Shown: positions 6,427 through 61,713 of the stretch, piece by piece | How the letters are laid out: each line of letters begins with the position of its first letter | Numbering within the stretch: position 1 is the stretch's first letter | Assembly (NCBI GenBank): GCA_043228905.1 | Contig: JBHGNT010000005.1 | Location: forward strand, 21,080,001 to 21,144,000 | Length of the DNA: 64,000 bases | DNA from: Azolla caroliniana | Taxonomy: Eukaryota > Plantae > Polypodiophyta | Reading direction: 5' to 3' | Made by a program: the position numbers and the translations under genes | Notes under the pieces: model-generated | Databases searched by the model: none | The model's input: only the letters and a program-made list of their open reading frames with translations | Told to the model about the DNA's origin: nothing

Positions 6427-6736
6427 TCATGAAAATAAGCTTGTGAGAAGGAGCTCATTCCAAGCATCGGGGAGGCCTGGGAGGCACCAATGGCTACAAT
6501 CTTGGTTCCTCAAATGAAGAGGATCTTTTGTTTCCATATTATATATTGAACAATGTGCATCCTTCCTATAGTTTGACATCCCCGTTATATCCAATAATTG
6601 GACACCCATTCCTCTTAAGTGTCCTGTTTCAAACACAACATGTTTCTTTGTCCAATGCTCATTTTCAAACTTTGTGCCCATTGGCCATGGTTGTGTCTCA
6701 TCAATGCATTTCCCACCCATATCCCACCTGGCTCCG
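6427..6736 (-). CDS. TBL: TBL exon 4 (catalytic DxxH)
   Basis: cag| then GARWDMGGKC..RKDAH.S.Y..QDCSHWCLPGLPDAWNELL; stop TGA at 6427. Confidence 0.95.
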
Positions 6737-34335: not shown

Positions 34336-34910
34336 CAGTTGGATGCAAGATATAGAAAAATGGTTTGGTAGATGAGATGCGAGACACTTGCATCATGATG
34401 CATCATTAGATTCCTTTGTAAATAAATCCTTTTTGCAATGCCAATGTATTATGACATGGGACAAATGTGGAGGCTCACGATTCACACATTATACTACACA
34501 TGTTGCACCTAACTACAAAACCATATTCTTTGCGGAATGGGGAAATCATACACATCGATACATGTTAGAGCCCATATTGTTATCTGCCATTTGAACCATT
34601 GCTTCCATGCGACTTAGCTTACATGCATTGCGATGTGAGACACGACGCTGGGTATAAGTTCGCGAGTCTGAGTATCACACTTTGATACAATGCTCTGCCT
34701 TGGATCATATTCGACCATGCTTTCCACATCTGTTCGACCGAGCCCAATCCTTGCATGAATTCCTCTCACAACCATAATGTGCACTCTCGATGGCAACATT
34801 CATTGGTAAAGTTCTTGAACATCGAGAGTCACTACTCACTTTCACACGTATCACGTGAAATGTAATATTTTTGGTCTCATAGGTCATATTTGACCTTCAA
34901 AGATGATAAT

Positions 34911-34966
<56 letters not shown>

Positions 34967-34975: not shown

Positions 34976-35654
34976 CTAAAGTTTCTAAATGGCTTAACCG
35001 GCTTGAGTCGGTTCGGCGAGGCTCAAGCCAAGCCAAGCCGCTAAGCCACTTTAAGCCGGTTAAGCCAAACGGTTTAGGCTTGAGCAGAGTTGTTGCCGAT
35101 CCCTAATCGTCCCGGATGGAAACAAAAGTGCTCGACAATGGTGCGGCATTTTCTCGAGTAAGGAGTCTTCATAGGAAGAAGAACGTAACGTTCTTGACTG
35201 TACGTGCCAACCACGAAAGGAATTAGGATAGTCTCGGAGAAGATGCTTCGGATTTTTAGGTCGGGCTATTTGCGAGTGGGGAGTGAATAGTCCAAACAAA
35301 GGTATGCCCCAAGAAGAAAGAAAAGTTCACGATTTTTTGAAAGGAGGGTTGTACGTAGACGAGTGAAAGCATGCGAGTGGAAACAATTAGCTATTTCCTT
35401 GACATAGCTAATTAGCTATGCAAAAAGCTACCATTGATAAATAGACATTTTTGCAAAAAGCTACCATTGATAAATTAGCTATGCAAAAAGCTACCATTGA
35501 AAATAGTAAAGAGTTTTAATTATATAAATGCAACATAAATTGATATGTGCACCATAAATTATATACCGAATTCCTCGGTCCATTATGCATGATCCTTTGC
35601 CACATCACATGGGCCATCTCTGGTTGAGTATTCTGTCTTAGATTACTACCACTG

Positions 35655-36680
35655 TTGCTAAACCCTATTGAGTTCACTCCTCCATTGCTGACATTCTACA
35701 CTTAGTTACCGGCTCTGTGCGGTCCAAGTATCATCTGCCACTGTTCGATTTGACAGAGTTCACTCCTCCATTGCCGCCATTCTACACTCCATTGCCACCA
35801 TTGTTTAGTGCAAGCATCATCTACCAAGTTCACTCCTCCATTGTTGCCACTCTACACTAAGTTGCCGCTACTATGAAGGTCGTATATTGCTGCCATTTTT
35901 CGATCTGAGGGAGTTAACCCCTTCTCCACAACCACCATTCTACTCTTAGTTGTCGTCACTGTGCATTCCAAGCATCATCTACCATTGTTCGATCTGACGG
36001 AGTTCACTCCTCCATTGCTATCATTCTACACTCAATTGTCGCTACTGTTCGATCCTGGATTGCTGCCACTTTTTGATTTGACAAAGTTCACTCATCCATT
36101 GCCATCAGTCTACACTTAGTTGCCACTAATGTTCAGTTGTGTATTGCTGCCACTTTTCGATCCAAGGGAGTTCACTCCTTTTGCACTGCCGCCATTGTAC
36201 TCTCAGTTGCCAACGCTATGCGTTCCAAGCATCATCTGACGGAGTTCACTTCTCCATTGCCATCATTCTACACTCAATTGCCGCTACTATTTGGTCCTGG
36301 ATTGCTGCCGCTTTTCGATTTGACAGAGTTCACTTATCCATTGCCATCATTCTAGACTCAATTGCCACTACTGTTCAGTTGTGTATTGCTGCCACTTTTC
36401 GATCCGAGGGAGTACACTCCTCCACTACTGCCATTCTACTCTTAGTTGTCGTCACTGTGCGTTCCAAGCATCATCTGCCACAGTTTGATCCGATGGAATT
36501 CACCCCTCCATTGCCATTGTTTTACACTCAGTTGCCACCATTGTTCAGTTCTGGATTGTCAAAACTATTCGATCAAACGGAGTTCATTCCTCCATTGCCG
36601 CCATTCTACACTTAGTTGCCGCCACTATTCGACCCTGGATTACCACCACTGTTCGGTCCTGGATTTCAATAACTATTCTG
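35655..36680. repeat. Degenerate minisatellite (GAGTTCACTCCTCCATTGCCGCCATTCTACACTCAGTTGCC.. units of ~70-85 bp) upstream of the transposase
   Basis: More than 10 recurrences of GAGTTCACTCC/CATTCTACACT. Confidence 0.85.
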
Positions 36681-36832
36681 TCTATTGATTATCTTGTGTA
36701 TTGTTGTGTATAATCTTGTGTATTGTTGTTGCCCATAGCCATCTATAATACACGTCTTTTTTTCGGGAAAATTAGGGTTAGACCCATCAAGCCAAATAGA
36801 AGGGGAAGGAGGGTGTTTAGAATTACCCCTCA

Positions 36833-39800
36833 ATGATCATCAGGATAGGGATGATGATATCAGGACACAACAAGCGATATGAAAGTATTGCGTTGAAAAA
36901 AAAAAGAAAACATCGTCAATTGTTGAAGGATACAAAAGCCACACTCACTAAAGGTAAAGATAGTATTGGTTGCGATATAGGTCTAAATATCACTGACAAT
37001 GGAAGTAATGAGACTACTATCATAGAGAGAAAGGTTGTTGACTATTTCAATGTTCAAACCAAGCACATCAGCAATGAAGACAAGAAGGTAGTACTTTATG
37101 GAATTTTAAAATTATGATCCATTGATAAAGGAGTTAGTTGATTGTGATGGTCTTAATGCAAACATAACATCTGTACTAGTAAATAATCTCTATAATAGTT
37201 TCATATCCATGAGCAGGTCAAAAGATGATCTTGTCTTAAAAAGGTCTAGGCTAATGATGTTACTTAATAGTGATGTTGATGATATTAACATCAGTGTGCT
37301 ATCTAAGGTAATTGGTGTTAGTAGAAATAGTGTGCACAATACATTGAACCGGATAGTTTCCTCGGGTGAAGGAACTAGTCTGCTAAAGCTAACAACAAGA
37401 TGTAAGCCAATGACACCCATAACATCAGAAATCAAGGATATAATCACAATATTTTGGACTAATGAGAGTAGGGTTTCGCCCAATAAGAAGGATTTATGCA
37501 GGAAACGTGTTGGAAGGAGTCAATACGAGGAGCATCCCATTCATCTTCTTGATGTACCTCAGGTATTTACATTCATCTCAACATTTGTTTTGACTTTTCA
37601 ACTTAGTTAGTTAGCTTATTAGCTACCTCCGAATATGACCATACCAGAATAGCTAATTACCTACCTCAGAATATGACCATAGCTAACTAGCTACTAGTAG
37701 TAGCTAATTAGTTACCAGAATAGCTAATTAGCTCCCTCAGAATATGACCATAGCTAACTAGCTACTAGTAATAGCTAATTAGCTACTAGAATAGCTAATT
37801 ACATACCTCAAAATATGACCATAGCTAACTAGCTACTAGTAATAACTTAATAGTGATTGTTAATAGCTAATTTAGATATTACCAGCTAATTCGCTACTAG
37901 AATAGTTAATTAGCTACCTAAGAATATCGAACATAGCTATTTAGCTACCACAATAACTAATTAGATGCCTATGACAATAGCTAATTAGCTACCAGACTAG
38001 CTAATTGCTGCTTATGAGTATAGCTAATTAGCTGCTTATGACAATAGCTAATCCCTTACTAGAATAGCTAATTAGCTACCTAAGAATATGAGCATAGCTA
38101 TTTAGCTACTAGAATAACTAATATACTGTGTATGACTATAGCTAATTAGCTAACTAGCTATTCCTAATAGCTAATTTAGTTATTACCAACTAATTAGCTA
38201 CTAGGATAGCTAATTAGCTACCAGTCATAGCAAATTAGCTAGCACCCACAACTAATTAGCTACCTAAGAATATGACCATAGCTATTTAGCTACCACAATA
38301 GCTAACTAGCTAACTAGCTAATTAGCTGCATATGACTATAGCTAATTAGCTACAAGATTAGCTAACTAGCTATTCACAATAGCTAATTTAGCTATTACTA
38401 GCTAATTACTTGCTAGGATAACTTATTAGCTACCAATCATAGCTATTTAGCTACTAGAATAGCTAATTAGTTGCCTATGATTATAGCTAATTAGCTACTA
38501 CAATAGGTAACTAACTATTCCCAATAGCTAATTAGTTATTACCAGCTACTTAGTTGCCATGATAGCTAATTAGCAACCAGAATAACTAATTAGCTACCAA
38601 TCATAACTATTTAGCTACCAAAATAGCTAATTAGCTGCCTATGACTATAGCTAATTACCTAACTAGCTATTCCCAATAGCTAATTTAGTTATTACTAGCT
38701 AATTAGCTACTAGAATAGCTTATTAGCTGCTATAATAGGTTTGGAGCATAGCTAATCAGCTAATCAGTATGTTCATTTTATTACGCAGGTCGATTTATTT
38801 ATTAGGTTCAGGCGAATGCATACAAATATCAAAGTTCAACTACGAACATTCGAGTCTCTTAAGCCACACTTTGTGAACGCTTGAAGGATCGATACACATG
38901 TTGTTGCATTTACCATGTACAAATGGGTTTTCTCAAGGAGTTTGTTAATCTACTACGTCACCATAACGCCTCCCTAACTAATGCAATTTGCACTTATGAG
39001 TGCCCAATTTGTCGATCGAGACCGCAAGAGCACTGTAAATCATCTGAGCATGTTATTTCTTCCATGAGTTGTCTTTTAGATTTAGTATTGTGTCCAAGAG
39101 AAACTGAGGCCATCTTCCATAGTCATAAATGTGTCATAGGTTTATGTCAAGATTGTGGACCTAGTAGTTTTAGGTGGTATTCAAATGAATTGAGTAGTGA
39201 AATATTAATCTCTGTCAAGTTATTTGAGTCAGTTGACACCAATTTCGAAGGAAAGGTGTGTAAAAGAAAGGATCTAGTCAGGAAGTCGCTTAAACCAAGG
39301 GATTTGGCGTCTCAATTTATAGTATCTCTAGGAAAGTTCATTAAACACAACTTCATTTATTCATGGCAAGCCCATTAGTTTAAGACTTGCATATCTGATT
39401 TTCCAAATGATGTAGTAGTCTCAGTTGTAGATTTTGCAAAGAATTATACTTTCAAGCAGCAGACTGAAATTCAATCTATGCATTGGTGTTTAGTGCAGAT
39501 AACTAACCATTCTTGTGCACATAACATATTTTCGAGTTTCAGGTGATGTTAAAAAAGTAATTCATTTTTTTATTTCTGATGATAAGAAGCATGATACCTT
39601 GTTCGTCCAACATTGTTTAAACTTACATTGGCAATGAGCTAAACGTTTGGAGCTTACTCAACATTGGGTCTGGTTTGACAGAGTTGCGTCACAATTCAAG
39701 GCTAGACGTCCATTTTATTTTGTGGGGAGGTATCCTGTTATAATAGATTTGGAGATGAGATGGATTTTTTTTGGGTTTGGCCAATGGAAAGGTGAACATG

Positions 39801-40670
39801 ATGGTGCAGGTGCTGTTATAAAGCGGGCACTTACCCATGAACAACTAAAGGCAGGTGGTGTGTAGATGAATTGTCCAGCACATGTAGTTGAATTTTTAAG
39901 AGCTAATATGTCAACGAATGCAACTGGTGTTTATTCCTCGTAGGTCCGAGGTATCAAACGTGAATTTTGGGAAGTGGCGATAGATGAAGTAAATAGGGAG
40001 AAGACCTGGGAGTGCCAAGGAATTCCCGAATTGCGATCTCTCCATGCTGTTCGCGGTTATTCTAGGTTGGATGGTCATTGTATTGCGGTTAGAGAATTAA
40101 TTTGTTTTTGCTTCCATTGTGTGCAGGAAAATTAGAGGTATTGTTTAAACAAAGCATATATTCAGAATTGGGAGTATCATACATTGAACGATAACGAAGC
40201 AGTTGATGGAGAAATAGAAAAGAATGAGGACTTCACATATGAACGATAACGAAGCATATATTGCGGTTAGAGAATTAATTTGTTTTTGCTTCCATTGTGT
40301 GCAGGGAAATTGGAGGTATTGTTTAAACAAAGCATATATTCAGAATTGGGAGTATCATACATTGAACGATCACGAAGCAGTTGATGGAGAAATAGAAAAG
40401 AATGAGGGCTTCACATATGAAGGACGTGGGGATACTCTGAGTGATGTCTTAAATGTTGGGGATAATTTCGTTGTAAATGCAAAAGAAGGCAATTTAGAGG
40501 GCGTTGATTTCTATATATTGAAGTGCACGGTTAGTAAATAGTGTGCAACGCAGAATATTGTAGATGCTTGGGGAAATTTTGTATCTATTGGGACATTCTA
40601 CATTGAAGGTTTTTTTTATGCAAGACTAGATTATTACGATGTGTATAGGCTATTAGAAGACTTTTAGAAT
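36833..40670 (+). pseudogene. Sola2-like DDD transposase (copy A), 2 exons, intron 37563-38788; frameshifts and stops
   Basis: Motifs FESLKPHFV..TCCCIYH, DFAKNY..EIQSMHW, FISDDKKHD, WVWFDRVASQFK, GQWKGEHDGAGAVIKR, CFCFHC. Phase-0 splice CAG|gtattt..cgcag|GTC. The Sola2 assignment comes from remembered motifs, not a search. Confidence 0.78.
37608..38762. repeat. Intronic array of the palindrome TAGCTAATTAGCTA
   Basis: Dozens of TAGCTA/TAGCTAATTAGCTA copies filling the transposase intron. Confidence 0.95.
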
Positions 40671-40924
40671 TAACACTATCATGAAATTAGCAATCCTGAA
40701 CATACTCTCAAAATTACACAGTAGATAAGTTACTCAAAACAAGCAATTTAATTCTTCATTGATTAATCTATCATCAAATTACATATTTATAACATCCCAT
40801 TGGCAATGCCTTCAAAACGACTATAAATAGCTAAGCTCTTGCTGGTAAGTAGAACTTCTCTACATATATTATATGCATACTGAGCTTGGTATGGAGTCCA
40901 CAACCATGCAATTAGTTGGCAACT

Positions 40925-43900
40925 CTATGCTTTCACCAAGTACTGTTTAGGCATTTCCTCGGGTAGAATGCGACAACATCTGCGAATGTTGAAGTAATGC
41001 CGGAAATGTTCTATATCCAGAATCAATGTATTGTCGGCATTATAATCTGGACAGGTAGCCCAAAAATCAGAAAGTCTTTTGAATCTTGCAACATCCTTTT
41101 GCTCACATTTCTCTCGTGTCCACTGGCCCTTGAAATGTTGTCGCCACTTTGGGAAGAATCTTTCTACACACTTCCACACATCTATACATGGTTTTTCACT
41201 CCAAATAAACAAATCAAAGTATTGCAAAGCCCACTCTAGAAATCGATTTGCGTCCCTCCTTGGTGTCATATATCGCACACTCATCAAGACTTTATCAAGC
41301 TCCAAGATCAAGGCTCTTATTTTGACTTCTAATGGTTTAAGTTTCCATTCCTGTAACCGAGACTCTATTACACCCTTTACTTGTAGCACACGATCAATTT
41401 CAATCAAATCAGGTTCGGTCGACACAATTGGTCTCCTTTTCCTCTTCAAACCCCTGGTTGACTGTGTTGGGCCTGGCTTCACATTCTGGTGCTCTTGTAT
41501 TGTCGACTTAGTCATTAGCTCGATGCATGTAGATATTGATTTGGTCGATATTAGCCCACTGGTATCAAATGTTGCATCTACCTGCAAAATTAGATCACCT
41601 GTGCAACATGCTTGATCAACTTGCGTGACCAAATCATTTGTGTCAGTTGCTACATCTACTTTCAAGATGTGGCCCTCTAAACACGCAACAACATCAATAG
41701 TTTCCACATTGCCATCGGCCTTAGGATCAATAGATTCAAACCCTTTAGACTCTACAACATCAGAAAACACCATCATATTCACACACAAAGTAAATAACAA
41801 TTTCACAAAACAACATAATGAACATGACATATTTTCCATCATAGAACAACATGAACATAATTATCTTGGAGAAACATCATAGAGTTCCATTGCATAATGT
41901 GGATCAAGCAACAACCAATCTGAGGCTTTACTTGTCCAAATAGATCATAGTAAAACTTCATAAAACCCTAGGAAAATCGCTAACAATCATATCCCACTAA
42001 TAAGTATTTCGCCCCAATTCAAGAGCCCCTTGACCGAGTAATTGGTCTTGTCCCCGATCGTGACCCCTTCTTCAGCCTTTTTCTAGCCGGTTGCCCATTT
42101 AGCCTTGCTTCTTTCACCCATTGCACAAGTCTATCCTCATCCGACAACCTTTCCATCACCTCAGCAGCGGCTTGCACATCAACCGTGTCTTGCGCTAGCT
42201 TTCTCAGTACAGTGGAATATGTTTGGAAATTATCAGTAGTTGGGCTCGGTGGGGTGGAATCAAGGTTTTGGGATTCGAAGAAATGTTGCATCAAGTGTTC
42301 AAAAACACTGTTGTTGTGAGCCTCAGATTTGCATGATGTTTCCAATATTTCATGGTTTTTCACATCGTTGCTTAATTCAGTACAATCTTCTAAAAGAATA
42401 GGGTGGAGCTGATCTGAAGGAGATGTGATAGCAAGACTCTTACTTTCAACCAAGTTGGCAGATATCTCCTCATCGGTTGCAACATCATCAGCACCGGACA
42501 CCTCATGTGCCCTCCTTAATCCACAAGATTCTACAACAACAAGGTAGCTAATTAGCTACTCAACTACATCTTAGCAAACTAGCCATTCTTCTAGACTTGC
42601 ATAGTAGCTAATTAGCTACCACTGACCTAATTGCCTGCTTCTCTTAGGTATGATACTAGCTAATTAGCTACTTTTTCTCAATATGGTAGCAACTAATGAG
42701 ATACTCTACTAAAGTATGGTAGTAGCTAATTAGCTACCAGTTAGCTAATTAGCCACTTAGCTAAAGTATGGTACTAACCAATTAGCCCCTATAACTAAAG
42801 TATGGTAGTAGCTAATTAGCCATTGTACTAAACTATGGTAGTAACTAATTAGCTACCACTTAGCTAATTAGCTATTGTACTAAACTATAGTAGTAGCTAA
42901 TTCACTACTCAACTAAAGTATGGTAGTAGCTAATTAGCTACCACTTAGCTAATTAGTTACTCAACTAAACTATGGTAGTAGCTAATTAAATACTACTTAG
43001 TTAATTAGCTATCACTTAGCTAATTCACTACTCAACTAAAGTATGGTAGTAGCTAATTAGCTACCACTTAGCTAATTAGTTACTCAACTAAACTATGGTA
43101 GTAGCTAATTAGATACCACTTAGTTAATTAGCTATCACTTAGCTAATTCACTACTCAACTAAAGTATGGTAGTAGTTAATTAGCTACTGTACTAAACTAT
43201 GGTAGTAGCTATTTGGCTACCACTTAGCTAATTAGCTACTCAACTAAAGTATGGTAGTACCTAATTGGGTACCACAGTGAGCTAATTAGCTACTCAATTA
43301 AAGTATGGTAGTAGCTAATTAGCTACCACTTAGCTAATTAACTATATGTTAGCAAATTAGCTACTACACTAAACCATAATAGCTAAATAGTTTCCACACT
43401 TTATACGGCTTACCTAATTAGCAAAGATGTAACTAATTAGCTACATTATGGTCACAAGCAACAATTTTACCTGTTAGTTTTCTCACTCATCTGGGAGAGT
43501 TGTACTACAATCCCCCAAACGGAATGGAGCAATGCGACGGGCATATTGAAAACAAACGATATGGTATGTGTGCTGGCATGGTTGTAGGTGAACCAACAGA
43601 GTAGCAAATTTGTCCTCTACACGTAATCCGCAAGCGAAGCAACGTGCTTGAATAGTCAACATATCGTTTCCGGGTTCTCCTTCATTTGGTAAGGGAGCAA
43701 GAATGTTCAGGTCCAATTCTTGTCTGCTCCTTACCATCTCCTTCAGAAAATGTACCTGTTTCGTAAGGCAACTAACTACCTATTCTTGACGGGAGTATTG
43801 TTCCTCCAACGCAATCGAGAAATTTACCGATTAATTATTCCTTAATGAGGAAGATACAACAACAAGAAACAAGAATCATTGACTTACTTGTAACTTGTCC

Positions 43901-44795
43901 AAATTGTAATCAACGACAATATTTACATCTAGAAGGTCCATGTTCATTGGAAGAACTTGGATCTTTGTCTGCAGTTGAATTTTCCGTTGGGGATCTAGCG
44001 ACCCCTCAATTTGAAGCTCTTGTTGAGCAACCTGTTCCAAATAATGCCTCATCAACACATTTTCATGTACTAGTTATTTATAACATATTACATACTAGCA
44101 AAACAATAGGTACCTGAATCTTATTTCTAATTGTTGTACTTGCCAAAGTGACTTTGCTCTCCATCGTAGTAGCCAATGTTGCTTTCTCTAACTCAGTCTT
44201 TAAAAACACCAATGTCTCACAGGCTTCATGGACATTTTTTAGCATAGAGCTAATCAATGTCTCACCTGTGTCATCGGCATTGGCTTTCATTGTGTGTCGG
44301 TGTCGCGTATACTTGCTGGTTTGTTGGGAGTCGGTAGTGGCATCATGAACTGCCATGCTCCAAAATCTTGCCATTTTTTGTTGCAAGCTCCCCATCTTCC
44401 GGCATCTTTCTACTGATGCCTCACCATAAATTGCCCAAGCTACCCTGTACATTTCAGGTTCACGAGATTCCTTCGCTATTTTCCAATACTCGTATGCAAA
44501 AGCTCTGGCAAATGAAATAGACAACTCGTTGTTGACCAGGATCTCTTCATGTACTTTCTGGTGCAGTCTCATGCAATCATCATACAGGTCTGGTCGTACA
44601 TGCTTGACCTTGACCTTGCCTTTCACTCTAGGCACTTTATATACTGACATCTAGTCTACATCACTAATCAATCTATTCGTTAGAACAGCATGGTCAATAT
44701 CGTCGAGCGACAAACCATATATGTGGTGAAAGTCCTCCTTTGTCTCGCAAAATTTTGCGAAGTTCAACACTCTAGGATAGGGGGGAACGAGCCAC
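40925..44795 (-). pseudogene. Companion gene of copy A: unknown N-terminal domain, coiled coil, RING finger, NLS-like basic patches, C-terminal FCP1/NIF (HAD) phosphatase-like domain
   Basis: Exons ~44795-44114, ~44070-43890, 43755-43471, 42530-~42010 and ~41750-40925, several with GT/AG borders. RING: CFACG..PCQHTYHIVC. FCP1-like: LILELDKVL..RRDANRFLEWALQYFDLFIWS..FKRLSDFW..YNADNTLILD. A few in-frame stops. Confidence 0.72.
42545..43445. repeat. Second TAGCTAATTAGCTA array, in the companion-gene intron 42531-43470
   Basis: Units such as CAACTAAAGTATGGTAGTAGCTAATTAGCTACCACTTAGCTAATT; donor at 43470, acceptor at 42531. Confidence 0.93.
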
Positions 44796-45709
44796 CTGAA
44801 ATAGAAAATCAGTAATCACAATTGGTGCAAAAAGAAAAATTTTAATGTGAATTTGGTGCAAAATTACAACACTTTGAGATAGTAATTTGAAATTTGTAAT
44901 TTGTCCTTTTCAACATGTATCAGAAATCAACCACTTAAAAAATCAAAAACCCTAATCAGAATTTGTCATGAGAACTGGTGCAAAATTACAACACATTGCG
45001 ACAGTAATCAGAAATTTGTAATTAGAAATTTGTAACCATAAACTTGTTATCTGAAATTTGTAATCAGAAACCCTAAACCACTTAAGGAAAACACAAACCC
45101 TAATTATCACTAAATGCAGAAATCAACCGTAATACGAAATTCTGTCAATCAGAAACACACTTGCTACTACACCCTGAAAGATGAACAGGGACATCCTTGG
45201 TTGGGTCTCCAATGACTTCACCCTATTCGATTTTTGGAAAAGATGAATAGGCACCAAAGTTACAAACAGTTATCAGACAGGAAAAAAAAAGTTTTTATAC
45301 CATGTAACTGATACATACTTGGACGAGGATCGAACTGGTCGTGTGTTGTAGCTCTAAAGGTGCAATGTCGTTCTCAGAGTTTTTGTGTTGCTGAGGGAGC
45401 TTCGTCTGCGTTCATGCTCAAAGTACTCCATATGTTTGGAGTTCGAACTCGAACTCAAGATTATTAGGAATTTGATGACATTCAAGTTGACCTTAGATGA
45501 TGGCACTATTCCCCAAGTTCCACTATGTCAGAAACCAAAGCTCAAATATTTGAGTATTCTCATAAATTAAATGACATGTATTTAACAAATAAAACTTAAA
45601 ATTTCGTAAACCATCCTTATGATTTTACCCACAAAAAACTAGCTAAACAAATAGCTAATTAGCTATAATAGTGTTTCGACTCGCATGCTTTTACCTTGAA
45701 CCAACATGC

Positions 45710-47361
45710 GACTTCCAACGGCATTTTCTTCCTCATTGGGGGCCTCAATCGGAAAGAGGTTTGGTTTTGCTTGTCTTCTAGGCAATCAACACACTTATCC
45801 AGAAGCACTTTCTTCACCTCCCGTAGGAGTTCTTTTTCCGCTACAATCTGCATTCCCTTCTAGCTCATCTGGCACAACTTCTTATGCCACAACTGACCGG
45901 CGTTGTTAGCTGCCACGTTTACCTCATTTCGGCATAATCAGGCATGCATTAGATATAGTATGCTATTTTTTTGGGCTCGAGCCATGATCAGGCTCCCTTT
46001 GAAGAACTTCATGACGTCATTTTGGATGCTACCCGTGTAGCCTTCGTCACCTAGCCTACTGACTGATATCATATTCAATCTGACTTCTGGAACGTGTCAA
46101 ACATCTCTCAACACTAATCGACGTTACAAGACACACATCTCCGATGCCAAAAATTCAGCATGCTTCTTCATTTCCCATTTTTACAAGATCGTGGTCTCCG
46201 GCCTTGTATGATGAGAAGCACTTTCGGTTGGGGGTTAGGTGAAACGACGCACCCGAATTGACCACCCATGTCGATTCTTCGCCGGCGAGATTGAGCTCAT
46301 TTTGTTCACTGATGAACAATAGGTCCTCTTCACTCACAACGATTGTTGAGGTGTTCTTTCTGTCGGGGATCTTCTTCAGCTCTACACCATTAGTTCCCCC
46401 TTTCTCCTCTCGAAAGTGTCGACAGTTCTTTTGAATGTGCCCTGACTTCCCACAATAGAAGCACGTGGGCCTTCCCCTCGACTTCGACCTCATCCCCGAC
46501 TTGTCTCGATTTTGGGGACTCCAATTTCAGCTTCTTCCTCGATTCATGACACTTTCTGTGACAAGGACCTTCGGGTTAGTATTAGACTCTTGGTCCTTTC
46601 AGCGATCTTCTTCATTCAATAAGCTTGACTTCACCTGCTCTAGGGATAAGTGTTTCCCATCTGATCCCGCGTTGCCCAATGTGACAACTATCAGTTGTCT
46701 GGAAGGGATCCCAACAACAATAGTGCTAATACATCATCATCAAGAGGCACTTCTAAAGAGGTGGTCTGATTTATTAGTCCTTGGAAGACATTAATGTGCT
46801 CCGCCATGCTGGAGCTGTCTTGATACCAGAGTCTCACGATGTTTCTGAAAACTGAGAATTTGTTCACTATGTTCTTGTTTTCGAACATTACGCCAATCTT
46901 CTTCCAGAGGACGTCAACACTTGTCTCTTCATCAAAGTTGTTGTATAAAGTCATGTCTATGAAACACCTTATATATGTTGCCGCCTTCAGATGCATGACT
47001 TCCCAAGTCGATGCATGGATCTTGTTTGGCTTACTTCTACCAAACTGCACTGGTAGCCACATGTCTTTGCACACCAACATCTCCCACATCTTCGACTTCC
47101 ACACTGAATAGTTGGAGCCGATAGGTTTGAACATGCCGCCAAAGTGTCCATCCATTATTCTAGTAACACTTTGCTAGGATCTAGACCGGCCACAACCAGT
47201 TTCACACTCGGTTCGGGTGCAAATAATTGAGATAAATAGTACACAGACAGAAAACGAGAAGGCAAAAAATAGGTACAGAGACACAAAATCTTTTATGTAG
47301 AAAACTTGACTTAGGAAAAACCACGGGGGTCCACAAACCCCAAGAAACAAAATCACCATAA
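45710..47361 (-). mobile_element. 5' part of copia-4: 5' LTR fragment 47172-47361, gag, protease, integrase N-terminus
   Basis: SNYSVWKSKM, CFYCGKSGH, WVVNSGASFH, CVDCL..KQ; LTR matches 28933-29059. Confidence 0.88.
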
Positions 47362-48238
47362 TGTTAGGATTTTGGTCCCTCCGGATGGGATATGAGTACC
47401 CGGCAAGGAAGACCCGGTGAGAACCGGATGATGCAGGCTTGGTGAGAACCTCTCACCGGATAAAGGGACATATAGGTAAATATGTTTCTGAGAGCCCATT
47501 AGGGTTATATTTGTAAATAGTCCTAATTTCATATTAGTATAAATATGACCTAGGGCAAACACTTATGGTGTTGGTTATTCTTTTGTGTTGTTGTTGTAAC
47601 TGATGTATAGAGAGAGAGATAGATATATAGATAGATTATATTATCGTCTTCGGAGGTCAAATATGACCTATGAGACCAAAAATATTACATTTCACGTGAT
47701 ATGTGTGAAAGTGAGTAGTGACTCTCGATGTTCAAGAACTTTACCAATGAATGTTGCAATCGTGAGTGCACATTGTGGTTGTGAGAGGAATTCATGCAAA
47801 GATTGGGCTCGATCGAAGAGATGTGGAAAGCATGGTCAAATATGATCAAAGGCAGAGCATTATATCAAAGTGTGATACTCAGACTCGTGAACTTGTTTAG
47901 GGCAAAGTGTGCATAGCCGACCACTCTCATCACTTGTACCCCAATGCCTTGTTTCACATCGCAATGCATGTGAGCTAAGTCGCATGGAAGCAATGGTTCG
48001 AATGGCAGATAACGGTATGGGCTCTAACATTTATGGATGTGTACGATTTCCCCGTTCCGCAAAGAATATGGTTTTGTAGTTAGGTGCAATATGTGTAGTA
48101 TAATGTGTGAAGCGTGAGCCTCCACATTTGTCCCATGTCATGATACATTGGCGTTGAAAAATGCCTCAGAGAGAGAGAGAGAGAGAGAGCGATTATCTAT
48201 TGTAACCACCGCCAGGGAAGAGAGATACATTGGCATTG

Positions 48239-48279
<41 letters not shown>

Positions 48280-48455
48280 CCGAGCGATTATCTATTGTAA
48301 CCACCGCCAGGGAAGAGAGTGAGCACGAGGTCGTTGCCTCTGTGCCCCCTTGTTGTATTCTTTTGACATAGTATTAGTTTCGAGTCTGTGGGCTCCTGTG
48401 GTTTTTCCTTCTTAGGGTTTTCCACGTTAACATCTTGTGTACTCTCTTGTTTATT
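47362..48455 (+). repeat. Copia-type LTR (related to the copia-1 LTR, opposite orientation) interrupted by a LINE fragment
   Basis: Starts TGTTAGG; AGCCCATT..GTTATATTTGTAAATAG..TATAAATATGAC and GAGGTCGTTGCCTCTG match the reverse complement of the copia-1 LTR. Confidence 0.75.
47606..48170 (-). mobile_element. Third copy of the LINE A 3' end, inserted in an (AG)n tract
   Basis: Reverse complement of ~31620-32088 / 34440-34915, flanked by AG repeats. Confidence 0.88.
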
Positions 48456-48930
48456 TTAACGTACGAGATGTATGGATGCTTGATAAGTGAGGGTGAATGA
48501 TGTAATGTATGTGGAATCTTATACGATTATGAGTGTGAATGTAAGTGTGAGTGTGGTGGATACAAAGAGGTGTGAGTGAGTGACTAGGTGTGAATGCCCA
48601 AGGGGCTTGCACCCTTGTGGATCTACGCCTTTGTACCTATTTAACCCCTTATGGGGAATGAATGAAGACAATAACAATTTTTCTCTCTCTCCTTCCTAAC
48701 GTTGAACCCCCTTGGGAGGGGGGTGGAGCCATTCAAGGCACCACCCCCCACCCCTCAATGCTTGTCTTGTTCTCATGTTCTCTCTCACCATCATACCATT
48801 CATCATTTTCACCATTACACTATGACTATCTTCATTATCAATCTACCATCATTGCTAGCCCTATTCCTATCTTTATCATTATCATACCCTAACCCTAAAA
48901 ACATACAACACTTTCTGGTGACCACAACGG
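48456..48930 (+). repeat. Probable gypsy-type LTR with PBS-like TGGTGACCAC
   Basis: Ends ..CATACAACA at 48910, then TGGTGACCAC; followed by a purine-rich leader. No coding part seen. Confidence 0.45.
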
Positions 48931-49589
48931 CGAATCCCCTTTGAAGATGGAGTCCACAAATGATATGCGGTGGTACGATGTGCAAGAGGAAGTCAAAAAA
49001 TGATGTGTGAGAAAAGAAAAAAATGGTGACAAAGATGTGCAAAAAATGGAATCGACAACACTGTGCAAAAGGCGACGACAATGTGCGAAAGAAGTCCAAA
49101 ATGGAAGATTAACTACCGCATAATTCTACAGCGAATTAATCTCTATATGTGTATGTTTTGTTTGGTCTGTTTTTGTCGTAAATGTCCACGAAATGGTGCC
49201 AAAGATGTACGAAAACGATGACAATGTATGAGAGGAAATCACGGAATGTTGACGTTACGTGAGTGTGCGAGAATGGAAAATGGAAACGACAATGTGCAAA
49301 TGTGTGGTTAGCGACAATGTACGTGTGCAGGAAAGCGTGGTGCGAGAGACAGCCAAAAAATAGAAATGAACAAGAAGAAGAAAAACGCAGACCAAAGCAA
49401 CACAAAAGAAGGAAAGAGAGAGGAAGGAGAAGCAACATTCGCAACGGAAGAAGAACAGATAAAAAGAAGAAGAAGAAGAAGAAGAAGAGAAGAGAGAAAC
49501 AGAGAAACGACATGATATGACACACAAGAAGAAGAAGAAGAAGAAAACAAGAACATTGTTTCCCGTTACGAGAATAGGAGGAAAATATG

Positions 49590-52527: not shown

Positions 52528-52798
52528 GGGTCGAAGCATGCTACGGTGTACCAACTTTTGGCCAAAAATTTAGTACTAAATCGAGTCCGAAGAAAATAAA
52601 CATTAAAAATTGAAAATAAAACAATTATCGTCTATTGAATGGTGTTCAATTTCAAATAACAAATTCATTACGTCACACTCTAATGTACAAAGATATTATA
52701 CGTCACACTCAAAATGTCCCAAGGCCGTATTTAATACATTAATTGTAACTTCATTCTCCTAGGTAGAGTTGTATGAAAGCACACCTGGAGAAGGTTTC

Positions 52799-53212
52799 TG
52801 TAAACGATTGCTTGCGGAAGCGTTAGAGAAGCAGAGAAAACAGAAAATATGCAGAGAGTACACGGGAGAGACAAAGAGAGCAGAACGTAAAAGTTATATT
52901 CAAAATAATAGTAAACACTCTGTACATACTCTGTGCTCAGTAGCACTATTTATACAAGTCCTATGCGGACTGACAGAAGTACTGTGTACTTCAATGCTCA
53001 CACAAGCACCTGACACTAACTCTGAGACTATAACTAGCTAGTAATCTAACTTATTACTAGGCTTCCGGTTACTGCTGGATCCAGCTAACCGGCTCTCTGC
53101 TCACCAACTCTGTAGCTTGCCGGCTCGGTTGCTCACCGGCATATCGATTTGTCTCACTTACCGGCTCAGGCTTTTCAGCCGATCCGGCTCCAATTGACCT
53201 TGCCGCTCAACA
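52799..53212 (-). repeat. Solo LTR (copia-6/7 related)
   Basis: TGTAA..TCAACA flanked by a perfect 5-bp TSD GTTTC. Confidence 0.9.
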
Positions 53213-53250
53213 GTTTCGAATGTGATAGTTGGTCTGTCTCTGTCTCTCTC

Positions 53251-53287
<37 letters not shown>

Positions 53288-53549
53288 TCTATCTCGAAGT
53301 TGTCAGACAGAAAGTGGCAGAAAGTTAGAAAGAAGACACATATCTATTACCTATCTCTCTCTTTCTCTCTCTCTCACTCCACCTTCGATTCTGTGTTTCC
53401 CCGCGTAGTTGTTGTTGCGTTCCCCTCTGTGCCAGGTTTGATCTTTGTCTCTATATATGTAGAGATTTCTGTTTCCCTGGATTGATTTTCTTTCCTTGTG
53501 TATGCTCGTTTGTCTCCTCTGTTAATGCTCATTTGTCTCCTCTACAACA

Positions 53550-56500
53550 GCCTCGTCAACAACCTCTTGCATATAGGTGATTTTGAAGGCTTGGTGTGCT
53601 CCCAAGGTGTGGTACCTCTGCCTTGACCTTAGCTCCATCTGCCTTCGACCCATCAATCCATGTGCAGCTTGTACGACCTCCAGGTATTCTCTGTGCTACA
53701 TGCCCAACTGGTATGTTTTCGTTTTCTCTGTGTTTCCTGTTTGTCTGTTTTTTAATTTGTATGTGTATGGGCATTTTTAGGTTTTGATTATTCATAGTCT
53801 ATGTGTTGCATGCCCAACTGGTATGTTTTCATTTTCTCTGTGTTTCCTGTTTGTCTGTTTTTAATTTGTATGTGTTTGACATGGACTAGTTTTCTTCTGA
53901 CTATTTAGGGTGGTTGTGTGTTTGACATGGTTTGTACATGCAACTTAGATGGAGTTGGCTATGATGAGTTGCTATGTTTTCGTTTTGTTGGTATGTTTTT
54001 GTTTTCTCTGTGTTTCCTGTCTGTCTGTTTTTAATTTGTATGTGTTAGACATGGATGAGTTTGCTTCCGACTATTTAAGGTTTTTGTGTGTTTGACATGA
54101 CTTGTACATGCAATGTGATGATTTGCTATGTGTTGATGGTAATTTGATGAGTTTTATTCTAGTACATGCATATTCATTCAACGAGAATAATGATGACTAG
54201 GAAAATAATGAGAAGGACACCCATAAAGAAGACATTGATGAAAGAGAAAGTGAAGACACTAGTGAAGGAAGGAAAAAGGACACCTATCAAAGAAAAGCAA
54301 GAAGACACCCACAAGAGAAAGGGTGATGAATTCATCAACAAAGAGAAAGAAGATGTACCACTCCATCATTCGAGACACACCTCTTGGATGGAGTTATTTC
54401 CTTCAAGCACGACCTGAAGTTTATCCTGAGCTGAAAGAGTGATTGATAAAAACCTAGGGGTCAACACATCACGATACAAGGCGAGGATTCCACATAAGTG
54501 GATTGAAGAGGGAATATGTGAACTTATTGAAGACGAGATATGAACATGTTTATGATACAAATCAAATATGTAACAATGAGGTGGGTACTGTTTTTGCACG
54601 TTCATTTGCATGTGAAGTTCAGGGTGGCATCGACGTAGATTGGAAAGATTTTAATCAGCACCAGTCAGAACATTATAAAGGGTCCTCCAGTACCAATGCT
54701 GGGTTGAAGTCATCGGGAACCTCTCATGTGGATATTCCGGCTACAACACCTGTCACCAAGTTCAATCTGCAAAGGTACGGGCCACAATGACTGAAAAGCA
54801 TGAACAGATGATGGCTAGTTGCATAGCTTCTATGAGCTCAAGAATACAAGCACTACTTGCTGATTTGGAAGCAGTTAAACCAATTGAGATACAGGCAGAA
54901 AAGAAATTCTCTTCATTAAAGACTACATATGAATGGATTGCATTGACAATCCAAAATTCAGAACGTGAGGTGTTGAAAGAGGAGTTGAAGAAAGAGCTAA
55001 ACAATATGGGCACTCAATTAGGTTCATAGATGAGAGACCTTGATACTTGCAAGAATGCACATTCCGAAATAGACAATAAGTTGTTAGCTTTAAAGTTGAA
55101 TTCTGAGAAACTTTGTGTTCATCTATAATTGAGCACCCAAGTGGTATGGAAAGTACCATTACTAGTATAGCTATATCACGGTATTGGCTTTAAAAGTTAT
55201 TTATTTCTACTTCTGTGGTATAAATATCATATTAGCTAATATATTATAACTTGTGTTTGCAATCTGCTAGGTGTATATTTTGTGGCCTCGGATTCAAGCT
55301 GGAGGCTATGGATGTTGTGATTACACTGTGGTTGCACACATATCATGTGCTATGTGCTAAGTATCATTTTGAGAAAGAGAATATATGTATGGATTGTAAA
55401 ACTACAATTGCGGTTGAGTGGTACTATGCTTGGGGTTTAAAAGTACACCTGTACAGTATGTGGCTCTACTATTCTATTGTTTGTATTATATGATGTCAAT
55501 TTACATTTGGATTAGAACTAGTGTACGCCACAATTCATACTTCAAATTTAGGAGAACAATGGATTAGTATTAGTGTATCTCTAACAACTAATATGTGGAA
55601 CCCTCATTATGTGGGTTAGTATTGGCAATACTCTTAATATATAATTGGTATGTGTAGTTGAAGGGATATTTTCCAGAATTAGTACTAAAAGGGAATCAGG
55701 TACAACATCGTCCAATCTATATTGCAACTTGCCTAGTACTAGTTTAGTAGACACTATACTTGTAGTACACTGTTGACTGTTAGTATTGTTTGTGTAACTT
55801 GGGAATTAGTATTAGTTATGTAATTTGGGAACAAGGTGTATAGTAAATTGTTGAATATTAGTATCGTTTGTGTAATTTGGAAATGAGGTGTGTCAAACAC
55901 AATCACATTTAGTACTAATATTGTTCAAGATTAATACTGTTGGTGTAATTAGTACAAGTTATGTAATTAGGTGTGTAGAACACATATCACGTTTAGTATT
56001 ACTTGTGTGCAAAATACCACGTTAGTACTAAAATCCAATCTACATTTGTTGGATTAGATGTTAGTCCAATCTATATTACAACGTGCCTAGTACTAGTGTT
56101 AGTACACACTATACTTGTAGTACATTGTTGATAATTAGTACTTAGCGAGTAGTACATTGTTCATGATTAGTACTAGTTCTGTAAATTGGGAACTAAGTGA
56201 GTAGTACATTGCTCATGATTAGTACTAGTTTTGTAAATTGGGAACTAAGTGAGTAGTACATTGCTCATTATTAGTACTACTTGTGTAAATTGGGAACTAA
56301 GTGAGTAGTACATTGTTCACGATTAGTAGTAGTTGTGTAACATGGGAACTAGGTGTAGCTTAATGAATTATTAATGCAACTCTTGTGACCTACATTGTAT
56401 ATTTTATATCACGGTACTAACCTTAAAGATTTTTTGGTTTCTTGCAATAAATGTTGTAGTGTCAAGCAACTCCACGCCAGGGAAGGTAATGGAACAACTG

Positions 56501-58175
56501 GCCCCTGTGCCTAAACCCTCGGTATCTGCTGAACATTCCAAGGTTCAAGGACCATCATTACCAATAACCTATGAGTTTTATGATGAAGATGAATGTATGA
56601 GAAGGGCCATTGGAGCAGTGGAACATATGCTTCTACAAACAAATTCCCCAAGCTCTGGTCAACATCAAAACAATCCAGGTAACACAAATTTTGCCAACAT
56701 ATCTTAATTCTCATTTGAGAAAGTGTTGAATGCCTAATTTCTTTAGAAATAGAGCCAACTAAGAAGAGGAATACTGCAAGAATGTTGTATGGAAAGGGCA
56801 AGGAAGGCAAAGTTGAATGCAATGGTGAGACATATATGTTCTCACCTGTCCGCAGAGTTGTCAACCTAATGCATTGTCTAATACCATGTACTTGTGTTAC
56901 TAGCTAATGACGAAATGATCTTTGGTGAGGGAGATACGAGTCCAAAACCTGATCATGAAGACGAATTTATCACACTCCCAAGTACACGTCAAAAGCCAGT
57001 TTTTGAAAACAATGATTTAGATCATAACAACCCTATGATAGTGTTGCTTTTGGTGCATTCTATAGATCATAACAACCTTGTTGAGCACTTAGATGTTGTG
57101 GAGAAGATGACCGAGCCTGCCACTTGCAATGGGGTATCTACGGCTGTACAGTATGACGATGTAACAATAGGTAAAAATGTGGCTCTTAACCCTATGTTCA
57201 TTGTTGTTGGTATGTTTGCAAACTTTTGAGTGTGTGAGTTGATACTAATATTCTTTGGAATCCCATTATTTAGGTTTACAAGAGCAGTCCGATTCCCAAT
57301 TGCAATCAAATGAATCGGGAACTATATGGAGCACAAGTGCAAAGTCAGATTCTAGGATTAACCTTTGCACGGAGGCAGACTCTGGAAGCACATCTTCTAC
57401 ACATGAGGATTGTGAGAAAAACGAAGCATTCATATTTGAAGAGTAGTTGGCATGTACAAACAACAATTTGTCTAAAGAAGCACATGAGGAGTGTGGAAAG
57501 AATATGGCAAGTACTAAAGAGAAGACTGATTGTACTGAGAATGTATCTGTAGTGTCTAAAGATTCCCATGAGGAGTGTGGAAAGAATATCGCTAGTACTG
57601 AAGAGGAGCCTGATTGTATTGAGAATGTGCTAGTAGTGTCTAAAGAATCCCATGAAGATTGTGGAAAGAACATCGTTACTAATGAAGGGGAGCCTACTAG
57701 CATCACCCATGAGGACCAGGCAATAAAGACCACCCAAGAAGGGGAGCACGGTTCTCTTAAGAATGAGGTGACAACCACCGTACAAGAGGAGTTGACCCAA
57801 GAAGGAGAGCACAGTGGTCTTAAGAATGAGGTGACTATCACCAGCCAAGATTTTGCCTGGAGTATTGTTGTAGCCCACATACAAGAGCCTAATTGTACTG
57901 AGACTGAGCATACTAGCAACAACATGAGTACTAAAATAGCCCACATTCAGGAGATGAGTGATAATTTTTCTATCGACAGTACCTTTGTGGATGTGTGTAC
58001 AAGCATTGCAGTTGCAGAAAACACAGTTGCTCTCTCAAGCTTGCCACTAGTACAAGGTGCCCGTGCATCCACGCCTGTCTTTGATGCCTCTAATGATGAA
58101 GTGCCACTTAGTCAGCTGATACCTAAAGGCTTTAAGATACTGATTGTCTTTCGATTGTACTTGAACTTTAGCTGA
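53550..58175 (+). pseudogene. Companion gene of copy B: unknown domain, coiled coil, RING finger, acidic repeat region
   Basis: 54503-54790 (YEHVY..NNEVGTVFARSFACE..VDW) aligns with copy A (HQKVH..NNELSISFARAFAYE..VAW). Coiled coil 54787-55029. RING 55263-55440 (ARCIFCG..LHTYHVLC..C..C). Exon borders approximate. Confidence 0.68.
55700..56370. repeat. Intronic array rich in TAGTACTA/TAGTAC (~50-bp units) after the RING exon of copy B
   Basis: For example GGGAACTAAGTGAGTAGTACATTGCTCATGATTAGTACTAG repeated 3-4 times at 56150-56350. Confidence 0.82.
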
Positions 58176-58908
58176 ATTGTTAGTGATGTCTGAAATTGAA
58201 CTATTTGGTATACCAAAATACTATCTCATTTATCTGAAATAGTTATACCAGTGTCTTTCGATTGTACTTGAACTTTAGCTAAACTATTAGTGATGTCTGA
58301 AATTGAACTATTTAGTATACCAAAATCCAGTAGTTATACCAGTGTGAAATTCTATATTGCCAATTGTAGAGAATGAAAATGTATTCTATTGTTAACTCTG
58401 AAATGTTGTGAAGATCAGATCACTCAGCTAGTGTTGTAGTGTAATCTGAATTTCTATATTTCTAATTCTGAAAGATCTTTGGTGAGGGAGGTACAAATTT
58501 ATCACACTCCCAAGTACACTCCCATGCAGCCATGATTGTGTTGATTACAAATAAAATTCTATATTGTTAACTGAGATGTTATATACAGTTCCTTATACCA
58601 GATGAAGATTTAGAAGACTGGTATATACTGTCATGCAACCGAACTTTACATCAGATGTATGTATCCGTCTAATTGAGATACTTTGGGAGACTACTATGTA
58701 TTACTTAATACTTGCAATTGACATTAGTACTAAACTAATATGTATATTGATACTTGCGTTAGTACTAATATATATATTGATACTTGGTATGGTCTCCTTG
58801 AGTGCACATGGTTAGAGTTGAATAATGACTTGTGTGCACACAATAGAGACTTGATAGTTGAATAAGTTTGGGCCATATATAGGCTACTAAGTATTCAAGA
58901 GTTCACAT

Positions 58909-59100
58909 CTTAAACCATAGAAACAAGAAACTCTATAATTACCATAAACATTGACAATACAAAAGTATTGAAGACTTCACACCTTAAACCATAGAAACAA
59001 GCAACTCTATAATTACCATAAACACTAACAATACAAAAGTATTGAAGACTTCACACCTTAAACCATGGAAACAAGCAACTCTATAATTACCATAAACACT
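58909..59100. repeat. 74-bp tandem repeat (about 2.6 copies) between the convergent genes of copy B
   Basis: CTTAAACCAT.GAAACAAG.AACTCTATAATTACCATAAACA at 58909, 58983 and 59057. Confidence 0.88.
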
Positions 59101-59286
59101 TACAAAACAAGCTCAATAAATAGTCTCAATACATCAAATATATCGATTCATAATACATAATAGAAGAAAGACGAAATACATCGATTCATTTGTCAATCAT
59201 CAAAATTAATATATCAATACATCAAATAGTGAACTACAAGTGGATGTTTTTCAGTTTTCTGGTACAATATATTGATAGGGTGACTT

Positions 59287-60172
59287 TCAAGCATTAAATA
59301 GAGAGACCTCCCCTAATATGTGCTCATGAACCTCTTGGGGGACCTTGTAGACAATGTTGTATCCCTTAACCTTGTGCTTTGCTTGAGTCATATTGAATTT
59401 GATCGCAAGAATGGCATCAACGTAGATTATTGCGATCGGTGCTTCTTTTAGTAATGCATATGTGTTCTTGCACTGTGGCAACTTTGCATAATAGTTTCCA
59501 TACACGACAGACTCACCAAGGTTGAAATTGTTGCCTCAACCATCCCTCACCACTTCTTTCAATAATGTCTTGCCTTGCTTGCACACCACAATGTAGTAGT
59601 CTTCTAAATCTTCATTCTGAGGAGATTTGAGCACTGTAAAATGATCTCCAACTTCCAATAAAACTGCCAAGTCTTGATGTTGGTTGTAGTATAGAATATC
59701 GTTTGAATGTGCATCGTCTTCAATGTCATCTTGTCGTTCAAGCTCAAGCTTCTGCAGCTTCCAGGGCTCGACGATTGATAGGTTGATGCATTTATCCCAA
59801 GCTTCATCTATACACATGGAACAAAAGCATGATAAAGTACGGAGTAACAATTGTGTTGTGTCCTTGCGGCTAAACCCTAATACACAATGGGTGCTGCATG
59901 TGCCTTTCACGGTTTTACAACCATATGATTTAGTTCTATCAACCTCATCAGCACGAACTTCAACAAACAATCTATTCGTACCATCATTTGACATCTTCCA
60001 TGTTAGCCACTGCACTACATCATGTGCATTTTGTAACTTAGCACCATTATTATCCAACTGCTCACTTGTAAGGGCACGTTTGATCACAACCCCCGCACCA
60101 TCATGCTCTCCTTTTCCATGTTCAGACCCGAAGTAGTTCCATTGCAGACGAATGTTGAATAAGGAGAAATAC
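59287..60172 (-). pseudogene. Last exon of the Sola2-like transposase (copy B), one in-frame stop at 59536
   Basis: cag| then YFSLFNIRLQWNYFGSEHGKGEHDGAGVVIKRAL..TVKGTCSTHCV..LSCFCSMC..LEVGDHF..DYYIVVC; collinear with copy A 39740-40670. Confidence 0.82.
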
Positions 60173-60199
60173 CTGCTTTTGTATCTCAGGTTTCCAACA

Positions 60200-61620
60200 A
60201 AATTAGTACTATGTTGTCAATCGAGCTTACTACACATCCAGTAATACTGATTTAGTACAAATACAAAACAAAGCATAGCACATCGTATCCATTGAGAACA
60301 CTCTACACTTATTAAAAGATAAATAGTACTATGTTGTCAACCATGTGAACTTGGCATCCATTAATAGTAATTTAGTATGGATACAACACAAGGCATAGTA
60401 CAATGAATTCATGGAAAGCACTCTACATGAATTAACAGATAAATAGTACAAACTCTTCAATATCGGATAATACTATGTTGCTGACGACGAGTACTTTACA
60501 TTCATTAATACTGATTTAGTACAAATACAATACACAATACAGTACAATGTGTCCACGGAGAACACAACCCTCCTTAGAAGATAATTAGTACTACAACACA
60601 TGTACTTTACATCCCCCAATAAACACTGATTTAGTATAGATACAACACATAGTACAATACAGTGTGTTCATGGAGAACACTCATCATGGATTAATAGATA
60701 ATTAGTACGAACTCTTCAATATAAGACAATACTATGACTACAAGATGTACTTTACATCTTCTGATAATTACTGATTTAGTATAGATACAACACCAAGTAC
60801 AATACAGTGTGTTCATGGAGAACATTCAACATTGATTACTAGATAATTAGTACAAACTCTTCAATCTAGGACAATACTATGAGTAAAAGACATGTACTTT
60901 ACATCCTACGATAATTACTGATTTAGTATAGATACAACACACATTACAATACAGTGTCCATGGAAAACCCTCAACATGGATTAAAAGATAATTAGTACAA
61001 TTCTCTTAAGGACGGACAATACTATGAGTACAAGATGAGTACTTTACATCCTTCTATAAACACAACATAGTACAGATACAACACACAACATAGTACAATG
61101 TGTTTATGGAGAACACTTCACATGGCTTAAAAGATAATTAGTACAATTCTCTTAAGGACGGACAATACTATGAGTACAAGACGAGTACTTTACATCCTTC
61201 TGTAAATACTGATTTAGTATAGATACAACACACAACATAGTACAATGTGTCTATGGAGAACACTTCACATGGCTTAAAAGATAATTAGTACAATTCTCTT
61301 AAGGACGGACAATACTAGGAGTACAAGATGAGTACTTTACATCCTTCTGTAAATACTGATTTAGTATAGATACAACACACAACATAGTACAATGTGTCTA
61401 TGGAGAACACTTCACATGGATTAAAGATAATTAGTACAATTCTCTTAAGGACGGACAATACTATAGAGTACAATACGAGTACTTTACATCCTTTAGTAAA
61501 TACTAATTTAGTAAAGATACAACATACAACATAGTACACTTTGTCTATGGAGAACACTTCACATGGATTAAAATATAATAAACACAGATTCACGTGACAG
61601 GACAATACTATTTGATCAAT
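60200..61620. repeat. Intronic satellite, ~10 units of 145-147 bp (a few of ~118 bp), rich in TTAGTA/TAGTAC
   Basis: GATAA(T/A)TAGTAC recurs at 60318, 60438, 60580, 60697, 60842, 60987, 61133, 61280 and 61426. Confidence 0.93.
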
Positions 61621-61713
61621 CAAGAACAATTAACTTAGTTACAAACAAAATTAGTATGCATGCATCCATGTGAATAGTGTTGTGTTCGAATAGTTACAAA
61701 CATAATTAGTATG

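Follow-up and report, generated by a model that had tools for sequence, protein, structure and literature searches.

A 64,000-nucleotide stretch of the fern Azolla caroliniana (contig JBHGNT010000005.1, positions 21,080,001 to 21,144,000 of the forward strand; hereafter the window, in which all positions are counted) holds two DNA transposons of the Sola2 type, copy A at 35361-45696 and copy B from 52528 to 61713. Each carries a transposase gene and, facing it on the opposite strand, a second gene, which we call the companion and whose product combines a novel domain (the N-domain) with a coiled coil, a RING-type zinc finger and a basic tail. Both copies are dead and decayed. They represent a cut-and-paste Sola2 lineage of ferns, and probably of mosses, in which the facing companion has been retained all along, together with, in most fern-type families, arrays of a short DNA motif peculiar to the family.

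The two elements in the window

Copy A has the following features; splice models for both genes were built on sequence and homology only because the copy A companion was not found in the one RNA run examined, itself a guessed choice.

35361-35385, plus: left terminal inverted repeat (TIR), begins GAGTGAAAGCATGCGAG; the end at 35361 reads GAGTGAAAGCATGCGAGTGGAAACA, with TAGCTAATTAGCTA motifs directly after
35671-36628, plus: tandem array of an 84-bp unit upstream of the transposase, the unit unlike those of the intron arrays
37110-37562, plus: transposase N-terminal exon with weak helix-turn-helix (HTH); start approximate, about 36850; donor CAG/GTATTT
37563-38788, plus: transposase intron, packed with a AATTAGCT/TAGCTAA motif array
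38789-40670, plus: transposase main exon with Cys-rich region, DDD core (DFA, FDR, EHDG) and C-terminal domain
40925-41842, minus: third open reading frame (ORF), NIF/FCP1-like HAD domain (Pfam NIF, E 3.8e-6); acceptor-like site before 41751
42019-42530, minus: companion last exon, ending in the basic tail (RKRLKKG...ITRSRGS, stop)
42531-43486, minus: companion intron (GTGAG...TAG, in frame), packed with a TAGCTAA array as in the transposase intron
43487-44795, minus: companion main exon with N-domain (about 44370-44795), coiled coil and RING (43492-43650)
45672-45696, minus: right TIR, whose minus-strand sequence at the 45696 end is AGGTAAAAGCATGCGAGTCGAAACA; the element's own motif lies 40-44 bp inward

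Copy B mirrors this arrangement, with the companion on the plus strand and the C-terminal half of the transposase on the minus strand.

52528-52584, plus: terminus, ACCA directly followed by GGGTCGAAGCATGC; AGTACTAA motif 42 bp inward
54290-55181, plus: companion main exon with N-domain (54461-54760) and coiled coil, frameshifted
55242-55440, plus: companion RING exon
55445-56440, plus: companion intron with AGTACTAA motifs and an array of a 52-bp unit (56140-56355)
56414-58130, plus: exons of the companion further downstream, encoding acidic peptide repeats and the basic tail
59290-60172, minus: C-terminal half of the transposase, with the third Asp in HGKGEHDG
60173-61713, minus: transposase intron, array of a 147-bp unit rich in TAGTAC/AGTACT
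61714-64000, plus: copia long terminal repeat (LTR) retrotransposon inside the copy B transposase intron and foreign to copy B; TGTTGAG at 61714, primer-binding site near 62100

The copy A transposase survives as six broken pieces, its main exon disrupted by several stops and frameshifts as well as by a tandem duplication of 178 bp (40081-40421), and its three catalytic Asp are still recognisable within DFAKNY, FDRVASQFK and GEHDG on the plus strand. The companion main exon is interrupted by stops, and the NIF-like ORF between the two genes has a degenerate motif I (LELDKV). The 84-bp-unit array contains open frames rich in Pro and Leu but with no function recognised, and its unit is unrelated to the intron motif. 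No target site duplication (TSD) was found around copy A at any register (flanks AGAC and TGAA), nor are the flanks halves of one interrupted sequence, as joining them restores no single sequence. On the right, the flank (45697-47173) is copia interior (compare 11707-13206) whose continuation is missing at the left end, which points to deletion or recombination beside copy A. In contigs from three DNA runs, thousands of variant pieces together cover the companion and the NIF region of copy A completely, marking family A as a high-copy repeat.

Over 57 nt the copy B terminus shares 91% identity with the end of L002, an independent element with a different flank. Since 61713 is the copia junction rather than an end of copy B, the right TIR and the remainder of the element lie outside the window. 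No NIF domain or ORF was found in copy B. Between the copies, transposase pieces match at E values of 1e-11 to 1e-14 (38% identity over 179 residues) and the companions match pairwise in the RING (2e-4) and the N-domain (5e-4), with a single 52-bp match at the DNA level. The array-filled transposase intron sits at different positions in the two: copy A has no intron at the site used by B, and L002 has merely a 30-bp intron at the site used by A.

The initial annotation had seen two copies with a convergent pair of genes, 25-bp TIRs, a plus-strand transposase and a multi-exon minus-strand companion in copy A, and companions that resemble each other in N-domain and RING at the protein rather than the DNA level. 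Ends, motifs and exons bear this out, the TIRs of copy A being imperfect. Its start for copy B is sound, but 61713 is no end of that element, and to the gene pair must be added the third ORF of copy A and the intronic motif arrays, both of which it missed.

Affiliation and history of the gene pair

The transposases have a DDD triad of catalytic Asp in an RNase H/integrase fold. Sola2 TIRs reportedly begin with GRG, as Bao and colleagues are said to have described in 2009, and here GGGT..AAGCAYG or GAGT.. stands at at least 20 element ends; the terminus of Sola2_DFa-2 begins gag (PMC3627910). Compared motif by motif by eye, with no score, the transposase consensus is collinear with Sola2_DFa-2 and Sola2_PPa-1: RxxFxxxxPxxVxxxxxRxTCxxC is shared, and MDFKEN, FWSDGAKHFK and YHGKSDVD of Sola2 pair with VDFAEN, VWSDGAASQFK and GHGKGEHD here (PMC3627910). 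Besides copy A, paired TIRs are present in L005 (29 nt at 90%), in L007 and in L009 (22/22 each), and the short GRG-type TIRs and the triad are Sola2-like. Of the 4-bp TSD typical of Sola2, L009 has a perfect example (CTAT/CTAT) and the two-gene element L007 reads TCCA/TTCA, but it is missing from L005 (AATT/GCTT) and from copy A. What sets the present elements apart are the companion gene, the NIF ORF and the motif arrays, none of them described for Sola2, whose known accessory gene is Fanzor1. Sola1-1_Ec32 of Ectocarpus is likewise a large Sola, whose accessory gene, on the opposite strand, has been proposed to act by binding and modifying the element's own sequence; it is a Sola1, and its accessory protein, a ParB with an N4/N6 DNA methyltransferase, is unrelated to an N-domain with a RING (PMC12477816). 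A viral origin of the transposase was considered and rejected, as it has no relative in IMG/VR, the bacterial genome collection lying outside that scan.

Homology searches with single exons, natural ORFs or database proteins as queries placed the nearest named homologues of the copy B transposase in the fern Adiantum nelumboides, and a wider search added homologues from Cryptomeria, Klebsormidium, Calypogeia and a thrips. L002, from another sample, is a near-intact member of the B family (transposase 82% identical to that of copy B, same companion exons); L005 (9.95 kb) and L007 (12.4 kb) are complete, with both TIRs, a transposase and, facing it, companion and NIF ORFs, and L006 and L092, from the A. 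nelumboides assembly, repeat their gene order. In all, the companion recurs at about 17 other distinct loci, probable moss contigs among them: the Ga01162xx/Ga0209xxx contigs, which we take to be moss (Sphagnum) DNA in view of their GC content and of the samples they come from. A RING profile made from fern pieces alone matched sequence beyond the 3' end of the transposase, on the opposite strand, in a set of contigs that included low-GC metagenome ones (L010, L021, L023, L028, L044, L075, L089), where the N-domain is present on reading; refined profiles added L024, L026, L030, L035 and L086, in a partly circular manner as some had served as seeds. Where at least 8 kb lies downstream, a facing companion occurs at 8 of 10 loci (duplicates merged), the two without it being L001, with a truncated transposase, and the Cryptomeria locus L008, where a Gypsy element follows. 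At L051 (14786-15223) and L089 (2105-2979) N-domain copies are oriented at odds with the neighbouring transposase, and that of L089 follows a GGGTAGATGCATGG terminus of its own, so that a further element has probably inserted close by. In a sister transposase clade, L056 (3658-4917) has a RING ORF downstream on the transposase's own strand, possibly a different accessory arrangement; we rejected it as the same companion since it does not match the N-domain profile.

Local trees were quick LG+G4 trees with midpoint rooting, built from pieces matched by hidden Markov models and joined with X, and carry a long-branch warning for the B clade. For 16 pairs, the groupings of transposases and of companions agree for the most part (Mantel rho 0.82, p 1e-4; fern-type pairs alone 0.92, p 3e-4). 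The 5.3-kb element L009 of Klebsormidium nitens (4695-9997; TIR GGGCGGTAGCACGG..) is a complete, transposase-only Sola2 that falls basal to the two-gene clade, and neither companion nor motif array was found in it, which makes a later gain of the companion, inside the clade, probable.

One clade of companions seems to exist apart from the transposase: A. capillus-veneris GOP47_0017568, A. nelumboides L7F22_043104 and a 530-aa EukProt transcript. The gene is intact, with N-domain, coil and RING (L003:10001-11549, L091:10001-11602; transcript P0190), no transposase lies within 10 kb of it in L003, and it is syntenic and 84% identical in DNA between the two species (P0040/P0195/P0190). It is these copies which could speak for passive cargo: a RING gene taken from the host a single time would be carried by the elements to no effect, the arrays being neutral satellites. 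In the tree, however, the Adiantum clade nests among element-borne copies, which makes its gene a candidate for domestication and not the donor. Open frames and the RING Cys/His residues are moreover retained across families with transposase identities of only 34-52%, and one motif has been amplified independently in two introns (see below). Passive cargo is thus largely refuted, and we rate it as very improbable.

These data decide what can be kept of the wider claim of an undescribed two-gene Sola lineage. Its premise, that Sola elements are transposase-only, falls with the ParB-methylase of Sola1 and the Fanzor1 of Sola2; the recurrent pair stands, and the literature searched holds no description of it. 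That the pairing is ancient and no one-off capture agrees with the further loci and the congruent trees, and the intact copies sought in relatives exist. The facing order holds at most loci with 8 kb or more downstream, and a 4-bp TSD is absent from copy A and L005. Companions as ordinary host genes can be rejected for the bulk, all but the Adiantum clade lying inside elements.

Motif arrays and the possible role of the companion

Most fern-type families have a dominant 7-8-mer of their own, concentrated in one intron of each gene: AATTAGCT in A (85 copies), AGTACTAA in B, L002 and L001, ACCACCTG in L005, GGTAGCTA in L007 (74 copies) and AGTACCTA in L006 and L004. The dominant motifs hardly occur in other families or in the remaining 44 kb of the window; A, B, L002 and L007 additionally carry them 25-60 bp inward of the ends. 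In 7 of 8 cases a transposase intron most resembles the companion intron of the same element (permutation p 5e-5). As the 147-bp and 52-bp units of the two copy B introns have a longest match of 16 bp, what they share is the motif itself.

An accessory gene together with a family-specific 8-9-bp motif, tandemly amplified in introns and other non-coding DNA, is also found in the Mutator-like VANDAL elements with their VANC proteins, which likewise have variable peptide repeats, and the arrays here behave as has been published for the target motifs of VANC (PMC5735166). We regard the present elements as Sola2 transposons with an accessory gene that possibly works like VANDAL/VANC, not as members of that group. 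The reading we lean towards, at a shade short of an even chance, is that the companion is a VANC-like anti-silencing or activator module. In its autonomous form an element pairs a DDD transposase with a spliced companion gene that faces it; on this reading the companion would be a chromatin factor with sequence specificity, comparable to VANDAL VANC or PMD proteins: its N-domain would bind the motif arrays of its own family, its RING might serve as E3 ligase or scaffold, relieving host silencing or activating the two inward-pointing promoters, and protein and motif would co-evolve family by family.

The N-domain is confidently modelled, and its nearest predicted folds are Transposase_32 and PMD (TM scores 0.51 and 0.48 over about 120 residues), with a PMD-type feature score of 0.87 for the fern type. 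PMD, Transposase_28 and Transposase_32 (MAIN/MAIL1 with PP7L) are helical plant domains borne by transposable elements; the group has domesticated copies, and its atypical phosphatase partner is a loose parallel to the NIF ORF. It differs in that none of the three gave a sequence-profile match to the N-domain, in its known carriers (Gypsy and Mutator-like elements) and in the phosphatase, which here is of HAD/NIF type and not PP7. We treat this kinship, drawn from models, as a lead only. The NIF ORF is confined to one fern sub-lineage, that of copy A, and all copies read have DLNG, DLQG, DMNG or ELDK at HAD motif I, not the DxDxT/V of active FCP1/SCP C-terminal domain (CTD) phosphatases, the second catalytic Asp being gone.

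Several observations weigh against the VANC-like reading. The N-domain found no match in Pfam, the PMD/DUF1985 link being borderline, nor in PDB by sequence or Foldseek; the moss type showed no PMD-type match in an Atlas feature search, and the DUF1985 domain that marks VANC was not found in the companion. Arrays are weak or indistinct at several moss-type loci, and the copy A companion was missing from the RNA run mentioned above. Finally, the motif adjoins the TIRs, the usual place of transposase-binding sites, and transposases can be sequence-specific activators, as the AtMu1 transposase activates cognate copies (bioRxiv 10.64898/2026.08.24.746577).

These last points would also suit arrays that are binding sites of a self-activating transposase, the companion being a separate, host-directed ubiquitin or phosphatase-decoy effector of benefit to element or host. 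The HTH-like transposase N-terminus, the NIF domain without its second Asp and the conserved, transcribed transposase-free companion of ferns are in line with this; the companion-less element has no array, however, and the nearest folds of the N-domain are chromatin domains of plant transposable elements, so to our minds this scenario is distinctly unlikely.

PIF/Harbinger and CACTA elements, to which the present pair may be likened, combine a transposase with an obligate second gene. Harbinger even shares the tail-to-tail layout (PMC12477816), albeit both groups have another transposase, a TSD of another length and another accessory domain (MYB/SANT, TnpA). By this analogy the companion, like the Harbinger MYB or CACTA TnpA, could be a cofactor that binds motifs or transposase and assists in the assembly, import or turnover of the transpososome, for instance by RING-dependent ubiquitination limiting transposase levels, with no anti-silencing involved. 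Strict co-divergence of both proteins, motifs directly inside both ends and conservation of RING, coiled coil and basic tail would all be explained, yet the Klebsormidium element transposes with a perfect TSD and no companion, and the majority of motif copies are intronic, kilobases from the ends. We find a cofactor role rather doubtful.

Pursued to its full extent, the VANC-like reading becomes that of an old bryophyte-to-fern Sola2 lineage whose anti-silencing system would be independent of VANDAL/VANC: a distant DNA-binding domain of PMD/DUF1985 fold fused to a RING E3 ligase, a CTD-phosphatase-like decoy in one sub-lineage, a co-evolving motif and one fern domestication. Taken as a whole, this is something we would sooner bet against than for.

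Setting and significance

The window is otherwise a retrotransposon-rich plant region with a single host gene of TBL/PMR5 type. Exons of that type (PMR5N, PC-Esterase) lie at 23591-25585 and about 6430-6771, both on the minus strand, an exon resembling the TBL C-terminal part being about 17 kb off, beyond nested retrotransposons. Beside the TBL exon, a 57-bp inverted repeat (23512-23645; 95%, 20-bp spacer) with tRNA-like boxes (GTTCGAGTC) resembles a miniature inverted-repeat transposable element or a short interspersed element. Reverse transcriptase ORFs of the long interspersed element type occupy 30783-33675 on the plus strand, and three partial copies of a repeat ending in a CT microsatellite (31527-32087, 34334-34941, 47609-48161; 92-95% identical) surround copy A.

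Mechanism aside, the elements are an unannotated high-copy class with a modelled domain that has no Pfam family. To our knowledge, transposon-encoded anti-silencing has been shown for only a few flowering-plant elements. If the VANC-like reading is true, the companions would constitute a separate, older anti-silencing system in a different superfamily, the PMD/VANC domain group would reach Sola and seedless plants, and ubiquitination would be suggested as a route to counter silencing. Natural protein-motif pairs (AATTAGCT, AGTACTAA, ACCACCTG, GGTAGCTA, AGTACCTA, AAGCACTT), together with intact public copies, would make co-evolution testable, and such a system may help to explain how large DNA transposons persist in the huge, methylated genomes of ferns.

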